Both the position numbers and the translations under genes were made by a program. Shown here piece by piece: positions 2,372 through 29,512 of a stretch of DNA of 29,512 nt. This DNA is from Octopus sinensis (lineage: Eukaryota). The stretch is from contig NW_021832909.1 in NCBI RefSeq assembly GCF_006345805.1, positions 1 to 29,512 on the forward strand, given 5' to 3'. The notes below the pieces were generated by a model that was not told where the DNA came from, made no database searches, and saw only the letters and a list, made by a program, of their open reading frames with translations. Each line of letters opens with the position of its first letter. Position 1 is the stretch's first letter.

Positions 2372-2629
2372 CAGGTTCGTTTATTCTTCATCAATGCTTA
2401 GCGCTGATACCGTTGCACTTGTTCTCACCAGGCGGCTTGCGAGCGCTATTCGGTCATTGATCTTCACTGTTTTCAGATAAAATTACCGATTTAGAAGCTG
2501 CTCTTTCCGGTATTATCTTTGAAGACTGTGTTCCAGTATGGCCACATTCCAAGGATTGCAACTAGTAAAAAAAAAATATGACAATAAAATAATAGAAATA
2601 GAAATATGTGTAGGTAGATGGACAAGAAG

Positions 2630-3172
<543 letters not shown>

Positions 3173-3404
3173 TTCCTAGATAGGTAGTTTGATAACTGGA
3201 AAACTGATGCGAAACATAATTTAGGCTTGTATAAATTATACAATCTTAGATCATTGCCAAGATTAGCAATTGTGTTGCTACAGACAATAGCTGTTTCTTC
3301 AAGATAAAAGTATTGATTAATATAACTATCTCGACATTTATAATTTGACAAATTTTAAATAAAAAAATTATATACTTATGATTCATTCTTTTGCACTTAC
3401 GCAA

Positions 3405-3440
3405 AGAATGTATGTATGTACATGTGTGTGTGTGTGTATG

Positions 3441-3483
<43 letters not shown>

Positions 3484-3549
3484 ACATATTCATATATTCA
3501 TACATACATATATATATACTCGTACATAAATACATATATATATATATCG

Positions 3550-3580
<31 letters not shown>

Positions 3581-3680
3581 GTGGTGGTGGTGTGGTGGTG
3601 GTGTGGTGGTGGTGTGGTGGTGGTGGTGATGGTGGTGCTGGTGCTGGTTGCTGGTGCTGGTGACGATGATAATGATGACA

Positions 3681-3720
<40 letters not shown>

Positions 3721-3757
3721 CGACGACGACGACGACGACGATGATGATGATGATGAT
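3405..3757. repeat. (GTAT)/(AT) and trinucleotide (GAT)n/(GGT)n/(GAC)n microsatellites
   Basis: Directly visible. Produce the poly-D, poly-S and poly-H ORFs. Confidence 0.95.
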
Positions 3758-3813
3758 AAAAAGTAACAACAAAAGAATGATATCTCGATATTAGATAAAT
3801 AGATGATTATGTG

Positions 3814-4149
3814 CAGCCTTGGCGAAAGGTATTCGGCCACCCCAATGTTTTGGGGTTCTGCTATTTCAATGTTAATGAAACTCGTGCACATGGTAGAGTA
3901 AGGTATATTTCACAATGTACAATAGTTATAATATCGCTCAGAAACAGGAGAAAACCATCGTTAGAGTTCTGTGAGGACTTCAACGAGGCGAGTACTTCAC
4001 AAATATCAACCATAACTGTTAGAAGAAGACTTGCAGAGTATGGTCTGAAAGGCTGTAAAGCGAGGAAGAAGCCATGAGTTTCTAAAGCAACTACTCAAAT
4101 TGGACAAGTGAGAAAGTCATTTGGTCTGATGAAAGCAACTATGAGGTAA
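3814..4149 (+). mobile_element. Tc1-like DNA transposon relic (left TIR-like end plus N-terminal transposase)
   Basis: Translation GRVR...SLRNRRK...ISTITVRRRLAEYGLKGCKARKKP* then KVIWSDESNYE (first catalytic Asp motif). cagccttggcgaaaggtattcggccacccc resembles Tc1 TIR starts. Confidence 0.75.
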
Positions 4150-4189
4150 GATAGTACAGTTATGCCTGTGAGACAATTTCTATCACCAT

Positions 4190-6081: not shown

Positions 6082-6135
<54 letters not shown>

Positions 6136-6183
6136 GGTGAATTGAAGAAATGGAGCTGAACGCAGATTGAACAGAAATCGTTT

Positions 6184-6276
6184 TATTTCATTCTACACGT
6201 GTTTCGAAAGGCACAATTTACCAAAATCCGATTGAATAATGGGACCATATTGTGTCTTTCTCTCCAGGAAGAAATA
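6184..6276 (-). ncRNA. Mirror hammerhead copy with core substitution (CTGGAGA, A6G), probably impaired
   Basis: Reverse complement of 6373-6465; plus strand reads tctccag at 6261-6267 instead of tcttcag. Confidence 0.6.
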
Positions 6277-6372
6277 GGAAATCCGTTGGAAAAAACAAAA
6301 ACAGAACAGAGGCGGAGCAAAACAAATCGAACTAGGCTCCTAAGAGCCCATGGTTTTTTCCAACGGATTTCC

Positions 6373-6465
6373 TATTTCTTCCTGAAGAGAAAGACACAAT
6401 ATGGTCCCATTATTCAATCGGATTTTGGTAAATTGTGCCTTTCGAAACACGTGTAGAATGAAATA
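6373..6465 (+). ncRNA. Type I hammerhead ribozyme with palindromic helix III
   Basis: CTGAAGA 6382-6388; helix II GAAAGaCACAAT/ATTGTGcCTTTC; GAAA 6444-6447; palindrome ACACGTGT 6447-6454; GUA cleavage triplet (A6455); helix I tatttc-ttc/gaa(t)gaaata. Confidence 0.75.
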
Positions 6466-6663
6466 AAACGATTCTGTTCAATCTGCGTTCAGCTCCATTT
6501 CTTCAATTCACCAATAATATTTTAATTTCAATTATCCGCACCAACGCACGGTTGCAACACCATATGGTTGTACCTCCAACCGTGCTGTTTACTTGCTGTG
6601 ATTTTTGCTACCAAGGTATCGGTTAAACTTTTGATTAATCTACTACAAGATTATTCATCTTTC

Positions 6664-6774: not shown

Positions 6775-6978
6775 CGAAGGCTGCCTGCAGGACTCGAACT
6801 CACATTTCCTGCAAACATAACAGGCGTTTTGCCATTGCACCAGAGTAATCCTTCGAGTTTCTCTATCCACAAAGTTTCTAAAATGGATAGAGAGATTCGA
6901 GGGATTGCTTTAGTCCCATGGTAGAACATTTGTTATGTTTGAATGAGATGTGAGTTCGAGTCACACAAGCATTCTTCG
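6775..6978. other. Gap-free imperfect hairpin (95-bp arms, 14-nt loop) built from a tRNA/SINE-head-like sequence
   Basis: Position i pairs with 13753-i across 6775-6869/6884-6978. The right arm contains TGGTAGAAC and GTTCGAGTC (A-box- and B-box-like). Confidence 0.75.
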
Positions 6979-8042
6979 ACTTTTTTTATCCAAAGGATTC
7001 CACGACCCAATATTTATATTCTTCTTTATAGCTGTATCTAACGAGCTTCGAGAACAACTATTCCAAAAACGACATGTATATAGCTTCCTTTTCCGTTCTA
7101 TATTATTTTATTGTTTCTCTCTCCTTCTCTTTATTTTTCTTCGTTTCTGTTTTACGTGTATCTTCCACCCGTTATGTAAACATTTGTTAGAACAATATAC
7201 CGTAGCATAACACTTAAATATTCAGTTATTAACAATTACGCAAGCTAGCCTTCATATTGGCTAAAGGAAAATCAGCGGACATTTTACATTTCATTCTAAC
7301 TATGTATATATTCATTAACAATTTTCGTTATCAGACGATCCGAAATGATAATATCAGTATAGTAACAACGAACTTACAGCTTTGAATAAATATTATACAT
7401 TTATATTTCTTATGGTTATTTTTGCTGCATGTATTAATACTTGTATTAGATCACTCCTGTATCAGTTGAATACTTCTGCGAGCTAAACAGCAGAAATGAA
7501 TAATGAATAAACATTCACAGTTTTGTTTTTGTTTGTTTGTTTTTGTTTTTTTAGTGGGGGGGGTTATGTGAAATCTCAGGCTCCCCACACAAATGCATAA
7601 CATGATATACCTACATTAACAGAACACAGCTTTTTTTCTTAAAATATGAGCTTTGGGACACGTATTTTTTTTATATATATATAGAGAGAGAGAGAGAATA
7701 AAACAATATTCCTACGGAATGCAAATATGGTTCCAAAATGGAGAAATGTCAAAACAATTTACTGGAGGTATTTGAAGCGAATGTTTTTTTAACGATATAT
7801 CAAAGTAAAATACTTGAGAAAGAATTCTCCCGATAATTTTCTTGAATATCTTAAGCAAATAATTGAAAACATCTCAATAATATCTTTCTACAGTCAGAAA
7901 AAGCAAGGAACGTAAAGGAAACAGACTATAGCATTCTTTTATCCAATCGCGTCGTAAATATTTAGAAAAAAAAATCTACTAGCATTATATCAACTAACAA
8001 CATTGTATTAAGCCATTTAAAGCTGTAAATAGCAGCGTATAA

Positions 8043-8352
8043 GTAAAAGACCCCCTTCAGTCATGTGTGACCATGGGTTTGCACCTAGAGAGTTACCCTC
8101 TGAGGCACAAGTCTGGGCAAGGTTGTTTTTATGGAAGACCAGCAGTCGCCCATGCATACCGGCCTCCCCTCTCCACGCCACCAGTGTTATCCAAGGGAAA
8201 GACAAAGGTCGATACAGCTTGGCACCTGTGACGTCGCAACTCATTTCTACAGCTGAGTGAACTGGAGCAACGTGAAATAAAGTGTCTTGCTCAAGAACAC
8301 AACACGCAGCCCGGTCCGGGATTCGAACTCACAACCTCACGATCATAAGCTC
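8043..8352 (-). mobile_element. tRNA-derived CORE-like SINE (family D), 5'-truncated
   Basis: Minus strand has B box GAGTTCGAATCCC, then gtgttcttgagcaagacacttta...ctcagctgtagaaatgagt resembling the CORE domain (ccttgggcaagtcactt...ctcatctgtaaaatggg), then an unrelated tail. Confidence 0.7.
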
Positions 8353-8655
8353 AAGTATTAGGTTAAAAACCATTGGATGGAAAATTTCGACTTTTCCATC
8401 CAAGGCGACTCTTAATCCAATATTTATATGCTGTTATTGATAGCTTAATCCGATTTTCCAGTATTTATTTGCTGCCGTTCAAAGTTACAAAATTCTTATT
8501 AAGTAAAAATTATATTTACGTAATTATATAAAGTAATCGTCACTAGTTTTTAGTATAGACGACAGAGCTGAAACGCCTGCGTTACATAGACCATATGTTA
8601 CTTTTAAAGATCATAGAGTTAATCTCTTCAACAAACCTTCACTCACTCTTACTAA

Positions 8656-9050
8656 GGAGTGGCTGTGTGGTAAGTAGCTTGCTTACGAACCACATGATTC
8701 TAGGTTCAGTCCCACTTCTACTATAGCTTCACGCCGACCAAAACCTTGTGAGTGGATTTGGTAGACGGAAACTGAAAGAAGCCTGTCATATATATGTATA
8801 TATATATATGCATATGTGTGTGTATATGTTTGTGTGACTGTGTTTGCCACCACCACCCAACATCGCTTGATAACCGATGCTGGTGTGTTTATGTCCTCGT
8901 AACTTAGCGCTTCGGCAAAAGAGACCGATGGAATAAGTACTAGGCTTACAAAGAATAAGTCCTGGGGTCGATTTGCTCGACTAAAAAAGCGGTGCTCCAG
9001 CATGGCCGCAGTCAAATGACTGAAACAAGTAAAAGAGTAAAGAGTAAGAG
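8656..9050 (+). mobile_element. SINE family C (head ggagtggctgtgtggtaagtagc; CORE-like), near full length, with internal microsatellite and CR1-type tail
   Basis: Matches the partial copies at 16705, 19113, 19372, 19905 and 20407. Ends gctccagcatggccgcagtcaaatgactgaaacaagtaaaagag. Has a small deletion in the CORE segment. Confidence 0.85.
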
Positions 9051-9239
9051 TTAGTCTCATCAACCTCATTAAATCTTCATTAAATATATGCAGCAAAAGA
9101 AAGGTTTCACAATCATTGATCCTCCAAAGTAAAGCCTGTAAGATTTTATCTTTGAGGAACTGTATTTATATGATACTTGCCATAGCAGCTACAACTAAAA
9201 CATTAGTAGACTTTCACGCAGTTTGACATCATTGATTAT

Positions 9240-9803
9240 TTTCTACTCGAAATTTGTGGGGGAGGGGCCAGTCGATTAGATCGACCCCAAGATGCGACTG
9301 GTACTTAATTTATTAACTCCGAAAAGATGAAAGATAAAGTCAACTCAGGCAGAATTTGGACTCAGAACGTAACGACTGACGAAATACCTATTTCTTTATT
9401 ACCCACAAGGGCTAAACACAGAGAAGACAAACAAGGACAGACAAACGGATTAAGTCGATTATATTGGCCCCAGTGCGTAACTGGTACTTAATTTAATCGA
9501 CCTCGAAAGGATGAAAGGCAAAGTCGACCTCTGCGGAATTTGAACTCAGAACGTAACGGCAGACGAAATACCTATTTTTCTATTACCCACAAGGGGCTAA
9601 ACATAGAGGGGACAAACAACGACAGACAAACGGATTAAGTCGATTACATCGACCCCAGTGCGTAACTGGTACTTAATCTATCGACCCCGAAAGGATGAAA
9701 GGCAAAGTCGACCTCGGCGGAATTTGAACTCACAACGTAACGGCAAACGAAATACCGCTAAGCATTTCACCCGGCATGCTAACGATTCTGCCAGCTCACC
9801 GCC
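9240..9803 (-). mobile_element. Nested trimer of SINE family B (head ggcggtgagctggcagaa; central ctttcatcctttcggggtcgataaa..gtaccag, Meta-domain-like)
   Basis: Head 9757-9803; tail-X units 9573-9756 and 9389-9572 (184 bp each); diverged tail-Y unit 9240-9388. All three break at gacgaaatacc. Confidence 0.9.
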
Positions 9804-10149
9804 TTAGTTCGACATCATTAATTACAACATTTCTTTCACAAAAGCTACTCTGTAATAAACATTAGAAAACCATCAAAATTATTATGCATTTAAGAAGATA
9901 AAGTTTGTCCTTTGACATTGAATCATGACCTTATGCTAAAGAAAAATGCTGCATTCTTAGATTTTGGTAAGGATCCAAGGGATTCGGCGGACGCTAGTGG
10001 TTTTATAAAGCTTTATATCTCAAATTCAAATTCAATTAGATTTCAATCTATACGTGGCACTATATAGTAATAATCGTCTGCAAAAATCTATGGAATTTAA
10101 GAGACCAATAGCTACAGAGATTCAAGCTAAATTTCAATGAATCATATTT

Positions 10150-10620
10150 GAAAATTATAGTTAACATAAAACTTAACATGGTTAATTTTCTTGACATAAC
10201 ATTCGATTTTGCGATTTTCAAACAACACCGTTATAGGAGACTCAACCAAGCATGATGATATATTAATATAAATTAAAACCACCCATCAACTATCTTAAAT
10301 AATTAATCAAAAATATTAGTCGTCGCCTTTCTATCATTTCACACGATAATGATGAGATTAACAACTTCGTAACTCAATACGAACGAGGCATTAAATCGTA
10401 GCGGTTTCAAAGATAAAAATATTTTCATAACAAATAGTTACGATAACGTACAGACTTGAAAACAGAAATTGTAAAAGTGTTATATAATTCTCCTCTTCGT
10501 ATTGACGTTTAGGCTAAAATTACCAAATAATTTTTTTAATTTTTAGATAAACATTTTGCAGAGTGATCATAAATATTAAAAAATTGTCTTTAACAAAAAT
10601 TTTAAGATTAACTATTTGGA
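10150..10620 (+). pseudogene. Decayed Penelope-like element reverse transcriptase (C-terminal palm/thumb region)
   Basis: Across stops and frameshifts from 10181: VNFLDITFDF...YIN.N.NHPSTIL / LIKNISRRLSIIS...YE / EALNRSGFK, later DKHF and FNKNFKINY. These match the PLE VNFLD..SNHP..RRLS..AL..SG..DKHF..FN.N..K.SY pattern. Confidence 0.65.
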
Positions 10621-10834
10621 ACAGAATATTTCATTGCATAATTATCTTGTAGCAATAATTAAAACAAAAAACATAATTTCCAGAACTATGAATCCTGTTC
10701 AGAACAACAAATCCAGCAATCGGAGTCGTCCTTAACACTTTACCTACCAAACACATTTTGCGCCATATTTGCTTCTGCACCAGCCGTCGAATTTTATTAT
10801 AAATTATACGTTTTTTTTTTAAATTTATCTAACC

Positions 10835-11110
10835 ATGTGTATGTGCGTCTGTGTCTGTGTGCGTGCATGTATGTGTATGTCTGTGTGTGTGTGCGCGTGT
10901 GCATGTGGGTGTGTGCATGTGTGTGCATGTGTGTGTGTATGTGTTGGATGTGCGTGTGTGTGTGCATGTGTGTGTCTACATGTGTGTGTATGTGTGTTGG
11001 ATGTGCATGTGTGTGTCTGCATATGTGTGTATGTGTGTTGGATGTGCGTGTGTGTGTGCATGTGTGTATGTAATGTGTGTACGAGCGTGTTTGTGTGTGT
11101 GTGTGTGTGC
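10835..11110. repeat. Cryptic (TG)-rich satellite with recurring gtatgtgtgttggatgtgc motif
   Basis: The motif recurs at ~10936, 10988 and 11029 within alternating purine-pyrimidine sequence. Confidence 0.85.
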
Positions 11111-11126
11111 TGTAACTCACTATATA

Positions 11127-11674
11127 TTGGGTTGTCCGGAAAGTTCGTGCCGATTTTTAAAGGAAAGAAAAAGGTTAATAAATACTTGCCATTGCATTTT
11201 TAATCAACCAAATATGAACCATTTTGTTGCACAATGCGCATCCGCCTTTCCTTTAACTTGAAAATACCCTCTTCCCAGAATTGAGGCGGTTTCATGGCAA
11301 AGAATTCATCAAGGTATCTTTTTACGTCATCTAAGGAATTGAAACTTTTACCATTAAGACTATTCTGCAGAGACCTGAATAAGTGGAAATCCGAAAGAGC
11401 AATATCTGGTGAATGTGGAGGGTAGAGTAACACATCCCAGCCGAGCTGCAGCACTTTTTGTCTGGTTCACAAAGCATCAAGTGCCGAAAATGAACTTTCT
11501 TATCTTCCATTTTAAAGGGTTACAGAATTAACACAGGTTAGAGGAACATAAACCTTCTTTCACGTGCCCTAAATGGAGGTGGGGTCAAATCCTATTTTAT
11601 GGACTCGACCATGTTCTAAAATAAGTCGAAAGGTAAGCTACTATAAATTGGCATGAACTTTCCGGACAACCCAA
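11127..11674 (-). mobile_element. Internally deleted mariner (DD34D-type) element, 548 bp, with both TIRs and TA target duplication
   Basis: 30-bp TIRs at 11127-11156 and 11645-11674 (28/30 identical); TA at 11125-11126 and 11675-11676. ATG 11510 gives MEDKKVHFRHLML, joined out of frame to LQLGWDVLLYPPHSPDIALSDFHLFRSLQN...NGSYLVD (11200-11454). Confidence 0.9.
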
Positions 11675-11879
11675 TACATTTCCAACGCCATATTAGGAAT
11701 ATAGCGTGAGGAATCACCAGTGATTCCTACTTTAGGCAAAGTGAAACAGAACAGGTTACACATATATATATTGTTTTCAGGTATCAACCACAAAGTATTC
11801 AATTAATAAGCAATATATTGATCTCGTAGAAAACCAATTTATATTTAGGTTCGACCAACCAGTTGCCTGCTGGTTATTG

Positions 11880-12891
11880 TTATCTTCGTATTATTGCATC
11901 ATACGGATTCCCAGTTCAGGCATTATTGTGACTCATACCCATATGTGTTCTGTTTGCAATCCATTTATGAGAAGATAGCAGAGCACTTCAAAATTTTCAG
12001 CATTGAACTGCGTTTTATCGCTTTCAGCCCATTTATACATTGCTTTCGGGGCTTTTTGTAGCTTTGCGTTCTCATCACTATCCTTGACATCCTGTGATAC
12101 TTTTTTTATTGTCAGTATAGCTGATGAGAATGGCTGACTGTATGACTAAGAGGGTGTTGAGTGAGCCAGCGACAGTACACTTTTCTTTTCTACTCTAGGC
12201 ACAAGGCCCAAAATTTTTGGGGGAGTGGGGGAACCAGTCGATTAGATCGACCCCAGTACGCAACTGGTTCTTAATTTATCGACCCCGAAAGGATGAAAGG
12301 CAAATCGACCTCGGCGAAATTTGAACTCGGAGCGTAAAGACAGACGAAATACCACGAAGTATTTCGCCCGGCGTGCTAATGCTTCATATTTCTTTATATT
12401 GCCCACCAGGGGCTAAACATGGAGGGGACAAACAAAGACAGACAAAGGGGTTACGTCGATTACATCGATCCAGTGCATAACTGGTACTTTATTTATCGAC
12501 CCCGAAAGGATAAAAGGGAAAGTCGACCTCGGCGGAATTTGAACTCACAACGCAACGACAGACGAAATACGGCTACGCATTTCACCCAGCGTGCTAACGC
12601 TTCTGCCAGCTCGGCGCCTTCAGTGACGGTGCCCTGCTTAAAACTGGTGTCTTCTCAGAGAGAGCACCGTTAGCTGTATTTGCTTAAGTCTTGCCTCTTA
12701 AAGTCATGAAACCACTTCTCTAGATTTCCTACCATGTCGAAGTTATGTGCTTCGTGACGAGTCATTCTGTGGCGAATTTTATCGAAGGCCTTTACAAAAT
12801 CGAGATATATCACATCCACGTGTGAATTGTCGAGCTGTTGTTTATAAGAACAGTCCAGCAGTGACCGATCAGAGAAGCAAATACAGAACAA
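11880..12891 (-). pseudogene. CR1/L2-clade LINE RT relic, interrupted by a SINE dimer
   Basis: DVIYLDFVKAFDKIRH (~12775-12830), QGTV (~12626-12637), then past the SINE: ISYTDNKK (YADD-like) and LQKAPKAMYKWAESDKTQFNAENFEVLCY. Confidence 0.75.
12181..12618 (-). mobile_element. Nested dimer of SINE family B: tail-X copy (12388-12618) joined into the head of a tail-Y copy (12181-12387)
   Basis: Both bodies match the 9573-9756 unit. Junction ggcgtgctaa-tgcttcat|atttcttta. Confidence 0.85.
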
Positions 12892-12934
12892 ATTTCATGC
12901 ATATTTAAATGTCGCTGAAATTAATTCACAGATA

Positions 12935-14273
12935 CAAATGAGCTGAACGTATACAAATGAGCTGAACCTCATTTAGCAATGGGCAAATGAAATTTAATGC
13001 ATTAAAATTTCCGGTTCTGCATTACGAAGGGAACACACATAAATCACATAATTAGACACCAGGTAACACAATGACTTAGAGCAATTATGACTTATTGGAC
13101 ATAGGAGTAATCATGTCAAATGATGCATCTTTCATTGGCCAGATCACCAAACTGACCTCTAAATACAGACATCATATAAGATAGATTCCATGAATCTTCG
13201 TGACAAGAGAACCGGTAATTATACTGGTTCTACGGAAAAGCTTAGTTCTGCTCACAATTTCGGTATCCAAATGCGTTCGGTCTTACAGAAGATATTGAAG
13301 GGTTACGAAGAACGTTTACCAGTAAAATAACTTTGGTTAAAAGCCTTAATTACAGGAAACGTCTGAAAACTATGCGTTTCTTCTCTTTTGAACGCCGAAG
13401 AGAGCAATATATCATTATATATGTGTTGTGTAGACGCCCCCAGATGATGAAGTAGGCTAGCCCAATACGTAGATATAGAGGGAGAAGTTTAGACGTCGGG
13501 AGTTGAGGAGAGGTCATCGGAACATGCGATATAACAGTGGCGACGATGATTTTGTTGCTCACATAGCCACTGTGTAGTATTGCGATATAACAATATGTAT
13601 AGACAATCTTGGAGGGAGTATGTTCCAAATTTCGGCATTAAAGAGAATTTTAATACACGAACTGGAAGATACATATTTATTTACTGCCCACAAGGGGCTA
13701 AACACAGAGAGGACAAAGAAGAACAGACAAACGGATTAAGTCGATTATATCGACCCCAGTGCGTAACTGGTACTTATTTATTCGACCCCGAAAGGATGAA
13801 TGGCAAAGTCGACCTCGGTGGAATTTGAACTCAGAACGTAACGGCAGACGAAATACTGCAAAGCATTTCACCCGGCGTGCTAATGTTTCTACCAGCTCAC
13901 CGCCTTATGTTCCTGCCAGCTCGCTTCTATATACACTACCTTCCATATACACCACCTTCGAAATCACGAGTAGAGCCACTCTATTGTTCTCAATATATAA
14001 CTGTCCTCAATTGCTCAAATGGCTACCTCAAGAAATCAGAAATGTAGAAAAGATCTCTACTAAAACATAAAAGGGAAGACATTGGATAAACTCTTAACGA
14101 TAATACCGGATCAGCCAACCATTCAAAGATACTCACAAAGAAGACCATCTGGTATGAATTCAATCATAGACCGACTTCCAGCCATGAGGCGACAGCAAAA
14201 CTCAAAGAAAGCAAATTAAGACGCTGCTCCAAAATGGCTGCGGTCTTACTACTGAAACCACTTAAAGAATAAA
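12935..14273 (+). pseudogene. CR1-clade LINE ORF2 C-terminal relic with 3' end; interrupted at 13425-13592 and 13674-13904
   Basis: Across stops and frameshifts: VYK*AE, FNALKFPVLHY, DIGVIMSNDASF, LNYRKRLKTMRFFSFERRREQYIIIY, ILEG/VPNFGI...NTRTGR, LLKWLPQEIRNV, LDKLLTIIPDQPT...NSIID. Ends ...actgaaaccacttaaagaataaaa. Confidence 0.75.
13674..13904 (-). mobile_element. SINE family B, tail X, full length
   Basis: Matches 9573-9803 end to end; inserted in the CR1 relic. Confidence 0.9.
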
Positions 14274-14329
14274 AAAATTCATAAAAGGATATTCATATAA
14301 ATATATATTTAATGTATTCATGCCAGTGT

Positions 14330-14463
14330 GTGTGTGTGCGCGTGCGAGTGTGTGCGTGCGTGCGTGTGTGGAGAAAGAGAGAGAGATGGAGGATAGGTAG
14401 AGATTTAAATATATTTGTAGATAGACAGACAAACAGACAGGAAGATAGATGAATGGATGGATG

Positions 14464-14549
<86 letters not shown>

Positions 14550-14555
14550 TAGATA
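14330..14555. repeat. (GT)/(GA)/(GATA)n/(GACA)n microsatellites
   Basis: Directly visible. Confidence 0.9.
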
Positions 14556-14939
14556 GAGATGGGTTATATATTGTATAGAAGGAACAAGGAATTTGAATAT
14601 GTGTGTGTATACGATGCACAAAATTATGAGCTGCCAATCAGAAAGATGAATGTTACCAATCAGAAAAAAAATATATATTTCTGTAGGAACTGAAATATTG
14701 TTTCCAACTAACTAAATAGATGCCAGGTTGCTAGGCAACTGTGATATAAACTTAAGTATTTGGTTGTGATACACGCACACACAACACGCACACACACGCA
14801 CACACATATTTTTGTTTTTACCTGGGGTTTTTTTTCTTTGTTATTTCATTTTCTTTCATCGGAATCAATATTTTACGTAAATTATAAGTTGTACTATATT
14901 TCTCCGATGTCACGATAACAGTTACTTAAAATGAAAACA

Positions 14940-15094
14940 TCACCATTATTATTATTATTATTATTGCTATTGTTGTTGTTGTTGTTGTTGCTGCTGCTGT
15001 TGTTGTTGTTGTTGTTATTGTTGTTGTTATCTATTTAATTTTATTATCACCATTATCATCTTCTTTATCATCACCATCATTGTTATTATTATTG

Positions 15095-15132
<38 letters not shown>

Positions 15133-15140
15133 GCTACTAC

Positions 15141-15176
<36 letters not shown>

Positions 15177-15182
15177 TACTAC

Positions 15183-15239
<57 letters not shown>

Positions 15240-15301
15240 TACTACTGTTATTATTATTATATTATTATTATTATTATTATTATTATTACTACTACTATAA
15301 C

Positions 15302-15334
<33 letters not shown>

Positions 15335-15500
15335 TACTGTTATTATTATTATTATTATTACTACTACTACCACTGTTATTATTATTATTATTATCATCAT
15401 TATTGTTGTTGTTGTTATCTATTTATTTTTATCATTATCACATTATCATCTTTATCATCAAAGATTATTATTATTGCCATTATTATTATTATTATCATCA

Positions 15501-15540
<40 letters not shown>

Positions 15541-15720
15541 TTTATTAATATCCATTATTATTATTATCATCATCATTATTATAATTATTATTATTATTAT
15601 CATTATTATTATTATCATCATATTATTATTATTATTATTTTATTATTATTCTCATTATTATCATTATTATTATTATCATTATCATTATTATTTTATTATT
15701 ATTATTATTATTATTATGCC

Positions 15721-15753
<33 letters not shown>

Positions 15754-15790
15754 TTATTATTATTATCATTATTATTATTAATACTATTGC
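14940..15790. repeat. ~850-bp degenerate (ATT)n/(GTT)n trinucleotide array with recurring tactactgt interruptions
   Basis: Directly visible. Source of the poly-L/Y/I ORFs 15080-15831. Confidence 0.95.
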
Positions 15791-26231: not shown

Positions 26232-26449
26232 TATTTCTTTACTACCCACAAGGGGCTACACACAGAGAGGACAAACAAGGACAGACAAACGGATCAAGTC
26301 GATTATAACGACCCCAGTGCGTAACTGGTACTTATTTAATCGACCCCGAAAGGATGAAAGGCAAAGTCGACCTCGGCGGAATTTGAACTCAGAACGTAGC
26401 GGCAGACGAAATACGGCTACGCATTTCGCCTGGCGTGCTAACGTTTCTG
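26232..26449 (-). mobile_element. SINE family B, tail X, interrupted in its A-box region by the ORF1-only element
   Basis: Matches 9573-9790 but stops at cgtgctaacgtttctg, lacking the terminal ccagctcaccgcc. Confidence 0.9.
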
Positions 26450-28112
26450 ATTTCTTTATTACCCACTAGGGGCTACATAGAGGGGACATTACAAACATTG
26501 GGGACATAGAACATCACAATTACATATATATGAGCAAAATGGAATATGAAAATGATATATGAGAGTGATACCGACGGCCCCATCCGCCAGCATCACTTAT
26601 CTGTCCTTCTTCACCCATTTCCAATTAGTATCCTTGTTTTCCTATCACAACATTCGTTTTTCTTTTAGCCATCTCTATCCATTCATCTTTTCATTTCCAC
26701 TGACCTCAAACACACACCCTCTTCCTCAAACCTTCTCGCCAATATACCCGTATCATCACTATCCACAGCCGTGTAGCTACAATCTTCGTGTTCGTACCAC
26801 TTGGTTAACACCTGTTTTTTAACGTTTTGTATGTCTTTCCCATGTATAACACATAAAAAATGGGTCTGGGACTTTCTTTGCTCTGTGTGTCTGTTTTTTT
26901 GATTTCTTGTAGGCGGGGAGTGGGTGGAATCACTGTTTGCAGGGGAAGGATGGGACTCCAAGGGTATGGGTGGTGTCGGGGTGGGTTGGGGTTCGCCACG
27001 TTTTTCTTTTCTTTCTTTTCTCTTTGTTCCCCCTTCTTTCCACTCTTGTTGCATCTCTTCTTCTGTCGTTTCTTCTCTGTTGTTTCTGTTTATTTTCTTC
27101 CTCTCCTGAGGCTTCCTCAACGCTTTCCTTTTCTTTTTCCTTTGGTGGGGAGGGCAGTAGGCTCTTATGTGACCCCTTTGGCCACACTTGTAGCACCTGG
27201 GCGCCCTACCCTCCACCCACACTCTCATAATAATATTTCCAGTTTTTATGCTGTCCGTAATCCTCTCATAACATCCGCCTCCGTTTGAATGTTCATAACT
27301 ACGTAGTGTGGCACCTCTCACGCCTTCATACTTCATAATGGCGTGGAGGATGTCCACTTTATCTTCATTTCCTTTTATAACCGCAGCCGTTATTAATTCG
27401 CCCTCTAGGTGTGGAGGTATTCCTTCCACCCTAATTCTGGTTGTCCGCCTATTCAGATACGAGGGTAACAAGTAAAACTTTTCTGTACTCACCACCTTGG
27501 CTGCTACATTCCTGGCTACTTTTTCACTTTTAAATTGCACCGTTATGGTTCCGTATTGTAATCCTTTTGTCAAGTACACAATTTCCTCTCCTGTCTGCTT
27601 GAGAGCCTCTTCAATTGCTTCCATGTTAATTACTTCCATCTTTCTACCTCCATTCATAAATACTTTATATTTAATGGTTCTACGATGGAACCAGTCTCCG
27701 CGCCCTACTGGAGGCAGCAGCTCGACCTCTCCGTTCTCGTCCTCCTTCACAAACTCCTGGAGGCCCGTCAACTTAGCCAGGGTCTATCTCTCTTTCCATT
27801 GACTTCTTCGTTACACCTGCGTAGGTGCCTTCCATCTTTTTCACCGCCAACTCCTCCTCAGATGTCATACTTCCGTCGAAATTTCAGAGAAATTTCTCCC
27901 TTCCATCTCCTCCGTTTGATGGAGGCGGCTCATAATCGCCTCAGACCGAAAAACGGCCTCCCGAACCGAAAAAAGTGCAACGCGCAGAACCAGTGAAACG
28001 CGAAAACCGCATCAACTACGCAAAATTCACAACAACAACCATTCACTTTTGTTCTTTTTTACCGAATTTTCAGGAGCCGAAAAAAACACAACCGACGTCA
28101 AACGAAGTGGTG
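26450..28112 (-). mobile_element. ORF1-only (half-LINE-like) non-autonomous retroelement, copy 1 (1663 bp)
   Basis: CpG-rich 5' leader, single Gag/ORF1-like ORF, ~170-nt 3' UTR ending AATAAAGAAAT, no endonuclease/RT ORF. The 9-mer acgtttctg lies at both ends (26441-26449, 28113-28121). Confidence 0.8.
26625..27868 (-). CDS. LINE ORF1/Gag-like nucleic-acid-binding protein (RRM-like region, CX2CX4HX4C knuckle, charged and Pro-rich tail); 362 codons open at 26683-27771, true ends inferred across 1-nt indels
   Basis: CYKCGQRGHIRAYC at 27154-27195. TTRIRVEGIPPHLEGELI resembles the Tx1/L1-type ORF1 RRM motif. Copy 2 supports extension upstream to MTSEEELAVKKMEGTYAGVTKK (ATG 27868) and downstream to EWIEMAKRKTNVVIG. 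Confidence 0.8.
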
Positions 28113-28121
28113 ACGTTTCTG

Positions 28122-29512
28122 ATTTCTTTATTACCCACTAGGGGGTACATAGAAGGGACATTACAAACATTGGGGACATAGAACATCACAATTACATATA
28201 TATGAGCAAAAGGGAATATGAAAATGATATATGAGAGTGATACCGACGGCCCCATCCGCCAGCATCACTATCTGTCCTTCTTCACCCATTTCCAATTAGC
28301 ATTCCTTTCTTTCCTATCACAACATTCGTTTTTCTTTTAGCCATCTCTATCCATTCATCTTTCATTTCCACTGACCTCCAACACACACCCTCTTCCTCAA
28401 ACCTTCTCGCCAATATACCCGTATCATCACTATCCACAGCCGTGTAGCTACAATCTTCGTGTTCGTACCACTTGGTTAACACTGTTTTTTAACGTTTTGT
28501 ATGTCTTTCCCATGTATAACACATAAAAAATGGGTCTTGGACTTTCTTTGCTCTGTGTGTCTGTTTTTTTTGATTTTCTTGTAGGCGGGGAGTGGGTGGA
28601 ATCACTGTTTGCAGGGGGAGGATGGGACTCCAAGGGTATGGGGTGGTGTCGGGGGTGGGTTGGGGCTTCGCACAGTTTTTCTTTTTCTTTCTTTTTCTCT
28701 TTGTTCCCCTTCTTTCCACTCTTGTTGCATCTCCTCTTCTTCTGTCGTTTCTTTCTCTGTTTGTTTCTGTTTATTTCTTCCTCTCCTGAGGCTTCCTCAA
28801 CGCTTTCCTTTTCTTTTCCTTTGGTGGGGGAGGGCAGTAGGCTCTTATGTGACCCCTTTGGCCACACTTGTAGCACCTGGGCGCCCCTACCCTCCACCCA
28901 CACTCTCATAATAATATTCCAGTTTTTATGCTGTCCGTAATCCTCTCTATAACATCCGCCTCCGTTTGAATGTTCATAACTAGTGTGGCACCTCTCACGC
29001 CTTCATACTTCATAATGGCGTGGAGGATGTCCACTTATCTTCATTTCCTTTTATAACCGCAGCCGTTTTAATTCGCCCTCTAGGTGTGGAGGTATTCCTT
29101 CACCCTAATTCTGGTTGTCCGCCTATTCAGATACGAGGGTAACAAGTAAAACTTTTCTGTACTCACCACCTGGGCTGCTACATCCTGGCTACTTTTTCAC
29201 TTTTAAATTGCACCGTTATAGTTCCGTATTGTAATCCTTTTGTCATGTACACAATTTCCTCTCCTGTCTGCTTGAGAGCCTCTTCAATTGCTTCCATGTT
29301 AATTACTTCCATCTTTCTACCTCCATTCATAAATACTTTATATTTAATGGTTCTACGATGGAACCAGTCTCCGCGCCCTACTGGAGGCAGCAGCTCGACC
29401 TCTCCGTTCTCGTCCTCCTTCACAAACTCCTGGAAGCCCGTCAACTTAGCCAGGTCTATCTCTCTTTCCATTGACTTCTTCGTTACACCTGCGTAGGTGC
29501 CTTCCATCTTTT
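28122..29512 (-). mobile_element. ORF1-only element, tandem copy 2 (5' end beyond the window)
   Basis: Colinear with 26450-27840; period 1672 bp. Confidence 0.85.
28282..29512 (-). pseudogene. Frameshifted ORF1/Gag-like copy 2
   Basis: Fragments 29178-29507, 28448-28909 and 28282-28482 translate to pieces of the copy 1 protein; knuckle-encoding DNA at ~28834-28875. Confidence 0.75.

Follow-up and report, generated by a model that had tools for sequence, protein, structure and literature searches.

LINE (long interspersed nuclear element) derivatives that encode only the protein of the first LINE open reading frame (ORF1 protein, ORF1p) are well documented only in mammals and at Drosophila telomeres. 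The mammalian HAL1, a non-autonomous element of this kind, arose several times and persisted as lineages (PMC5753468, citing Smit, 1999; Bao and Jurka, 2010). Among the ORF1-only telomeric elements of Drosophila (HeT-A type, Jockey clade), the second reading frame (ORF2) has been lost recurrently, and ORF1-only lineages spawn new ORF1-only lineages; these elements rely on the ORF2 of full-length relatives, with which they form head-to-tail arrays (bioRxiv 10.1101/2025.06.09.658640). No description of ORF1-only LINE derivatives or of LINE arrays in cephalopods was found in the searchable literature (Repbase and Dfam lay outside this search). The window analyzed here, 29,512 nucleotides (nt) of Octopus sinensis DNA (assembly GCF_006345805.1, contig NW_021832909.1, positions 1-29,512), carries at its 3' end, on the minus strand, head-to-tail copies of an element that is very probably a non-autonomous, ORF1-only derivative ("half-LINE") of an octopus LINE of the L1/Tx1 group. 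An earlier sequence-only reading of this DNA had proposed a HAL1-like non-autonomous retroposon of no recognized family; the retained LINE tail, the missing ORF2 and the silence of the literature all agree with that proposal. An element without a reverse transcriptase (RT) must therefore borrow one, presumably from a partner LINE.

The first copy of the element (28112..26450, minus strand; 1663 bp) consists of a leader, ORF1, and a 3' untranslated region (UTR) with a terminal tail, and lacks ORF2; the second copy (29512..28122, minus strand) covers unit positions 273-1663, its 5' part being lost at the window end. Copy 2 retains the homologous stop codon (TGA at 28284..28282) and the tail end (at 28122), and the two copies are 96.6% identical across 1407 alignment columns. 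The period is 1672 bp because the 9-nt sequence "cagaaacgt" separates the 1663-bp elements. Unit and period are thus as the sequence-only reading had given them; its tandem array holds as regards the head-to-tail second copy, but extends in the window over 1.84 copies and one junction. Copy 1 is collinear from end to end with two further ORF1-only elements of O. sinensis, at locus L007 (2497-4184; 69-79% nt identity) and locus L003 (68-78%).

The leader of copy 1 (27869..28112, minus strand) contains 21 CpG in 255 nt, and its CpG observed/expected ratio of 1.68 (ORF, 0.63; whole window, 0.93) bears out the CpG-rich leader described earlier. It is homologous to a LINE 5' UTR: the leader sequence "caccacttcgtttgacg" matches "gacacttattcatttttgacgcg" in the 5' UTR of the LINE copy that starts at L007 4185 (equivalent to L006 185), in an alignment made by eye and weaker than the comparison of the tails; the leader is probably truncated by about 15 nt at its 5' end. 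Downstream, a single coding frame can be traced by frameshift-tolerant alignment as a conceptual ORF1 of ~418 amino acids (aa) (26611..27868, minus strand), broken as assembled; upstream of it, an ATG at 27906..27904 is the positional counterpart of the L007 start codon. The longest ORF as assembled has 362 codons and starts with TTG (27771..26683); exact look-up of this 362-aa ORF found no encoding contig. The ORF1 stop is followed directly by the 3' UTR (26450..26610, minus strand), which measures 161 nt where ~170 nt had been claimed, leaves no room for an endonuclease- and RT-encoding ORF2, and matches L007 4022-4184, where the ORF1-only element of that locus ends, at 79% identity; no RT-like ORF occurs anywhere in the window. 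The element ends in ..GGGTAATAAAGAAAT without an A-tail, and its last ~40 nt (26490..26450) are a tail common to autonomous LINEs and a short interspersed nuclear element (SINE).

Three more ORF1-only elements (1.6-1.74 kb) were found at unrelated loci in O. sinensis and O. vulgaris, all with intact ORFs and all without ORF2. The L003 element (9460-11055, O. sinensis CM016880; ~1.6 kb) has an intact ORF of 384 aa and a 19-bp target-site duplication (TSD), cagaaaYgttagcacgccg, which shows that its target was the head of the SINE; no ORF2 follows it. The L007 element (2495-4184, O. sinensis CM016867; ~1.7 kb), with an intact ORF of 463 aa and 59% protein-core identity to the window unit, is inserted at the extreme 5' edge of a full-length LINE and flanked by the 16-bp TSD ggatgtgatataatga; an interpretation of "ggatgtgatataatga" as a native 5' terminus common to this half-LINE and the next LINE was rejected, as a TSD fits better (16/16 match, with diverged adjoining UTRs). 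The L014 element (6916-8651, O. vulgaris OX597833.1; 1736 bp) encodes an intact ORF of 379 aa (P0012), and carries an 11-bp TSD, tgctgggttcg; its tail, ..ggccttgtgcctataataaagagaaa, is a variant of the common one, and no ORF2 lies within 7 kb. With just 29% identity, the L014 ORF1 falls into a separate clade, which suggests that ORF2 was lost more than once among octopus LINEs. In a neighbor-joining tree, the window, L007 and L003 proteins form a group that also takes in two O. bimaculoides proteins and is separate from the LINE ORF1s, so that three of the four ORF1-only elements, the window's included, share one cluster.

The distinct duplications and differing 5' truncations of these elements have the marks of target-primed reverse transcription of a ~1.7-kb ORF1-only RNA. 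They also bear on the possibility that a single LINE lost its ORF2 by internal DNA deletion and that the remnant was duplicated locally, without any propagating family. The window taken by itself would accommodate such an event: fewer than two copies are visible, they are nearly identical and both have broken ORFs, and the 9-nt flanking repeats could mediate unequal exchange. Yet L003, L007 and L014 share the same architecture, each with a different TSD, a different 5' truncation and an intact ORF, and they are either 68-79% identical to the unit at the nt level or derived from another ORF1 clade; for the family as a whole this explanation is contradicted, and it retains very little probability. 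That genomic copies should normally run on into an ORF2, the outcome which the sequence-only reading had named as fatal to its proposal, is not what these three relatives show. Related ORF1-only elements at unrelated loci, each with its own duplication, argue that the window element is not the product of a one-off deletion. Comparison of the window ORF1 with L003 and L007, a check of the kind the sequence-only reading had called for, gave pN of 0.25-0.32 vs. pS of 0.69-0.78; since pN lies well under pS, ORF1 appears to have evolved under constraint, with synonymous divergence (dS) saturated.

Mammalian L1 ORF1p consists of a coiled coil, one RRM and a C-terminal domain. The octopus ORF1 is arranged differently, with two RRM-like domains, a CCHC knuckle, a basic and proline-rich linker, and a conserved C-terminal domain. 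Both RRM-like domains (domain 1, 27457..27678; domain 2, 27214..27444; minus strand) show the beta-alpha-beta-beta-alpha-beta order in an AlphaFold2 model built on a 63-sequence alignment (pLDDT 91.5, pTM 0.75), whereas a single-sequence AlphaFold model was unusable (pLDDT 38); in Foldseek searches against the PDB, the top matches were tandem-RRM proteins, namely IMP3 RRM12 (E=1.3e-5), NONO/SFPQ and hnRNP A1 UP1, with a probability of 1.00. The RRM-like region of the sequence-only reading therefore gains structural support and resolves into two domains. The conserved family motif LLPxYxGRRxTxIxVxxIPP precedes and opens domain 2, which in copy 1 includes a locally frameshifted stretch of ~16 aa.

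The CCHC zinc knuckle (CYKCGQRGHIRAYC; 27195..27154, minus strand) is present as described earlier, followed by the basic and proline-rich stretch, and is assigned on the Pfam zf-CCHC profile together with family conservation. As the sole Pfam signal in the window protein it scores 19.1 bits, just below the cut-off of 20.8, and the homologs P0006 (23.7) and P0032 (25.9) score above it; in the family alignment three cysteines are invariant and the histidine is kept in at least 90% of sequences, and the family profile matches retroviral nucleocapsid knuckles at E ~6e-6. The low-complexity linker (26866..27153, minus strand, from the translations), first basic and then proline-rich, contains the motif QPTPTPPxPLExHPxPAN, common to the window protein, P0002/L003 and L007. 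The conserved C-terminal domain of ~85 aa (FLCV..YEDxSY..IGNG; 26611..26865, minus strand) aligns with the C-terminus of the intact L007 ORF and with the ..LKxxFPxDVG ends of P0006, P0009 and P0014. An alternative frame, "PIFYVLYMGKTYK", taken as the true C-terminal frame or as a GIY-YIG motif of a Penelope-like element, was rejected, the intact L007 ORF supporting the ..FLCVIHGKD.. frame. With at least one RRM fold (from the model and Foldseek) and a CCHC knuckle, the protein falls into the RRM-plus-CCHC class of LINE ORF1 proteins, reportedly designated "type I" by Khazina and Weichenrieder in 2009.

The ORF1 family was recovered only by exhaustive phmmer search, which over 1.8 billion representatives found 224 homologs; the closest real matches, CCHC-repeat proteins set aside, are "uncharacterized" or "CCHC-type" proteins of O. 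sinensis, O. vulgaris and O. bimaculoides, and one homolog comes from Argonauta hians. Word-indexed search of 5.8 billion proteins gave no match with the stitched ORF1 protein and one match with the family alignment. Annotation of intact ORFs as proteins in three Octopus species, together with purifying selection in the ORF1-only lineage and a CpG-rich leader, is what a domesticated host gene would also show, that is, a tandem cellular RRM-CCHC gene derived from a LINE ORF1 and comparable to L1TD1; this origin is scarcely probable, given TSD-flanked copies that lie inside other repeats, carry LINE/SINE tail ends and no introns, and occupy loci that are not syntenic copies of one gene, and given the frameshifts in the window copies. 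An LTR (long terminal repeat) element gag was likewise rejected, LTRs being absent and the partner ORF2 being L1-like. As a separate observation, the 1041-aa protein P0100 fuses an ORF1-like N-terminal piece (residues 64-167) to WD40 beta-propellers, either a LINE-captured exon or a gene-model artefact. Another distant ORF1 homolog of 294 aa (P0011) occurs at the same position in a near-identical Logan contig from six runs (L008-L013, SRR11869384-94; four contigs of ~1.7 kb, two of 1.07-1.28 kb) in which no tail was seen; this could be the transcript of yet another ORF1-bearing element, and nothing is concluded from it.

The comparison with HAL1 can be drawn on this basis. The octopus unit has a LINE ORF1 homolog, no ORF2 or RT, conserved LINE ends, and dispersed relatives with their own TSDs (19, 16 and 11 bp; 9 nt in the window); like HAL1 it would encode ORF1p only and depend on the ORF2 protein of a partner, and the distribution of the octopus elements over at least two ORF1 clades recalls the repeated origin of HAL1. 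Unlike HAL1, it resides in a cephalopod host and ends in a specific tail of ~40 nt common to a tRNA-derived SINE. Because its homologs are octopod, its protein combines two RRMs with a CCHC knuckle, and poly(A) is lacking, the element is best regarded as HAL1-like in function and not as a member of the mammalian HAL1 family, with no apparent sequence relation beyond LINE ancestry.

Homologs of the ORF1 protein were found directly 5' of ORF2s with APE, RT and zf-RVT domains in O. sinensis (L004, L007), O. vulgaris (L005), O. bimaculoides (L015) and a marine-metagenome contig (L002), which upholds the earlier reading of the protein as a LINE ORF1. L002 shows the zf-RVT end of another ORF2, then the ORF1 homolog, 10 nt, and an APE endonuclease ORF; L004 shows a 615-aa ORF1 homolog followed by APE and zf-RVT ORFs. 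An intact ORF2 of 1132 aa in L005 contains the Pfam domains Exo_endo_phos, RVT_1 and zf-RVT, and matches human L1 ORF2p at E=2e-71 vs. 1e-24 for R2; because of these domains and this match, the partner LINEs are placed, by sequence similarity, in the L1/Tx1 group, the L1 and Tx1 clades being left unseparated. Thirteen recently active L1-Tx1 families have been annotated in O. vulgaris (PMC13282606).

These LINEs form arrays in three Octopus species, in which full-length copies follow each other head to tail, each tail abutting the next 5' UTR, and ORF1 homolog plus ORF2 are repeated every 5.3-5.8 kb (L005, L006/L007, L015). The O. vulgaris array (L005 430-13026, OX597840.1) consists of copies that are 99.6% identical; the O. 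sinensis array (L007 4185-20850, CM016867.1) consists of copies that are 75-89% identical, with differing 5' ends; the O. bimaculoides array spans L015 about 7100-14675 (CM046605.1). Two marine-metagenome contigs of unknown eukaryotes (L001, L002) show the end of an ORF2 and then the next ORF1, the same order as in the octopus arrays. Since its copies differ at this level and in their 5' starts, the L007 array must, as far as these alignments indicate, have been built by separate insertions; the ORF1-only element stands at the head of this array of at least four full-length LINEs. The mixed array resembles those of HeT-A-type elements, with the differences that the octopus ORF2 is L1/Tx1-like and that the sampled octopus loci are chromosome-internal (71/110 Mb, 32/40 Mb, 9.5/30 Mb), with no telomere role indicated. 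Outside the arrays, a degenerate full-length LINE of the same group (L004 9700-15400, O. sinensis CM016872.1) is flanked on both sides by (ATT)n and an ATT microsatellite may have been its insertion target; a 700-bp (ATT)n run is also found in the window, at 15079-15788.

"Stringent" LINE/SINE pairs, such as UnaL2 and UnaSINE1 of the eel, share a common 3' tail. In octopus, the ~40-nt tail (..TTGTGGGTAATAAAGAAAT) is common to the ORF1-only element, the ~5.3-kb LINEs and a tRNA-derived SINE, an arrangement that resembles the eel pair in its defined tail without poly(A), with putative recognition by the RT, and differs from it in having a third, protein-coding tier with the same tail. Every full-length LINE copy in L005 and L007, and in more diverged form that in L004, finishes with the same ~40 nt as the unit (..TGTCCCCTCTATGTAGCCCCTAGTGGGTAATAAAGAAAT), and so does the abundant SINE, of which the window holds copies at ~9390-9800, 12388-12620, 13675.., 21383 and 26233-26449. 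Across aligned ends of four ORF1-only elements, five LINEs and eight SINEs, a small hairpin (GCCC..GGGT, 4 bp) is conserved, with weak covariation support. The tail sharing would thus be a classical LINE/SINE common-tail relationship to which a protein-coding partner has been added. The SINE that lies directly 3' of copy 1 (26233..26449, minus strand) ends in the same tail type (..ttgtgggtagtaaagaaat), and its segment 26233-26395 is 97% identical to an O. sinensis copy at L003 6001-6164; from this identity the SINE family appears to be young.

Several features of the SINEs stand apart from the half-LINE. Two 3' tails occur (window 12180-12620, minus strand; L003 11056-11260): type A, ..ttgtgggtaataaagaaat, as in the LINE and half-LINE, and type B, ..cccctcccc..aaatttcgg..tagagtagaaaag, presumably the tail used by a different partner LINE. 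The two types meet at window position 12388, where a type-A SINE adjoins the head of a type-B SINE at about nt 14 of that head. At 9270-9800 (minus strand), three SINE copies repeat every 184 bp in head-to-tail order; the second and third are truncated at one internal site (..gaaatag|gtatttcg..), and the third has a different tail.

Target-specific LINEs, including Keno and others of the Tx1 clade, insert with precise 3' and variable 5' junctions and occasionally in tandem (PMC4640811). At the window locus, the spacer "cagaaacgt" between the element copies (28121..28113, minus strand) is identical to SINE nt 14-22 and is interpreted as one of the two copies of a TSD; it recurs after copy 1 at 26449..26441, where the remaining SINE sequence follows. 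Immediately 3' of copy 1 the SINE sets in exactly at its nt 14 ("cagaaacgttagcacgcc.."), without its first 13 nt, and the first 9 nt of this remainder are the second copy of the duplication. The window copy therefore reads as an insertion between nt 13 and 14 in the SINE head, as judged from the junction sequence, and the resulting order is copy 2, 9 nt, copy 1, opening with a LINE-type 5' UTR, 9 nt, and the rest of the SINE. The sequence-only reading had noted neither the SINE cut at nt 14 nor the SINE origin of the spacer, nor the C-terminal domain of ORF1.

The second copy could have arisen by a new insertion at the regenerated nick site, with a 9-bp duplication, or by unequal exchange between the 9-nt repeats flanking a single insertion. 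Re-insertion at the same site is plausible because L003 abuts this SINE position too and differs in its 5' junction, because the SINE at 12388 joins another SINE at about this position, and because the L007 array needed separate insertions. Junctions to SINE nt 14 occur in two of the four ORF1-only elements and in one SINE, with differing 5' junctions, and 3/19 SINE heads in ~140 kb are interrupted at ~nt 14 by a tail-bearing element (a biased sample, two loci having been chosen for carrying the element). Since the L007 and L014 elements sit elsewhere, the insertion specificity would be at most a preference. The likeness to Keno and the Tx1 clade comprises APE-encoding, L1-like LINEs and three tail-bearing elements at exactly the same SINE position; the differences are that the octopus specificity is not strict and that the partner LINEs are placed in the L1/Tx1 group as a whole. 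Two other accounts of the junction were rejected: a chimeric SINE-ORF1 element, possibly driven by RNA polymerase III, whose 5' end would be the SINE head (the leader aligns with the LINE 5' UTR, just 9 nt are SINE-derived, and a T7 run stands at the start), and base pairing between the RNA tail and the SINE target (the junction retains both AGAAA copies).

Assembly quality enters at this point. Between the window copies, a manual count from the alignment gave ~25 indel events, mostly in homopolymer length, vs. ~15 substitutions, a ratio that suggests long-read assembly error more than decay; with broken ORFs as assembled, both copies must therefore be either dead or mis-assembled at homopolymers. 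The same ratio, and the fact that copy 2 runs off the window end, would also fit a tandem that is itself an artefact, a long-read mis-join or a duplicated contig end concealing a single real copy. Little probability attaches to such an artefact: the substitutions and a 4-nt indel tell the copies apart, the junction has the succession of tail, 9-nt target duplication and 5' UTR that biology predicts, and head-to-tail arrays of the partner LINEs are present in three independent Octopus assemblies.

Several points nevertheless weigh against a half-LINE family with a borrowed RT. Aligned with frameshifts allowed to the intact O. sinensis L007 ORF, copy 1 requires at least 6 frameshifts (near 27781, 27306, 27257, 27150, 27073 and 26691) and copy 2 at least 13, so that this pair is not demonstrably functional; the claim of one ORF per unit holds for the traceable coding frame but not for intactness. 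Just one tandem junction is visible in the window, and it could stem from a duplication of the DNA or from faulty assembly. Annotated proteins led to all four ORF1-only loci, a route that biases the sample to intact ORFs, and, with dS saturated, part of the divergence may be older than the loss of ORF2. Finally, the partner LINE ORF1s are only 30-34% identical to the ORF1-only proteins, and no full-length LINE with a closely matching ORF1 was present among the loci seen; the partner LINE is therefore provisionally assigned by the shared tail alone.

If the unit is a half-LINE, a ~1.7-kb transcript would be made from the CpG-rich leader, and the ORF1 protein would coat its own RNA in cis; the ORF2 protein of the partner LINE would recognize the shared 3' tail and insert the RNA by target-primed reverse transcription, leaving TSDs of 9-19 bp and variable 5' truncations. 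A wider and rather doubtful extension, offered tentatively, is a three-tier retroelement community in octopus, in which an autonomous L1/Tx1-like LINE, ORF1-only half-LINEs and a tRNA-derived SINE would share one ~40-nt tail and insert preferentially into or beside one another, producing mixed head-to-tail arrays; the half-LINE ORF1 would be kept for ribonucleoprotein assembly or targeting. The sites behind this idea of self-targeting are SINE nt 13|14, the 5' edge of the LINE, and the position directly after the tail. Such a community would be the chromosome-internal analog of the Drosophila HeT-A/TART/TAHRE system.

A cephalopod lineage with an intact, selected ORF1 would mean that the strategy of keeping an RNA-binding protein of one's own while borrowing the RT evolves repeatedly in distant LINE clades. 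The presence of LINE, half-LINE and SINE on one defined, non-poly(A) tail makes cis-preference and tail recognition directly testable, in units of ~1.7 kb that are now annotated as "uncharacterized" or "CCHC-type" proteins. Approximately a quarter of the O. vulgaris genome consists of SINEs and LINEs (PMC13282606), and the activity of LINEs in the brain of the octopus is a subject of current research (PMC9115989); the signals recorded there could be confounded by half-LINE transcripts and their ORF1 protein, or could come in part from them.

The remainder of the window is animal-type DNA, 65% AT and rich in microsatellites, and an Rfam scan of it gave no match. The same ~60-nt sequence (ttggtgaattgaagaaatggagctgaacgcag..) occurs at ~6134 and ~6514 on opposite strands and forms an inverted repeat (6134-6514). 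At 6903-6975, ARAGORN predicts a tRNA-His-like gene with the unusual anticodon ATG.

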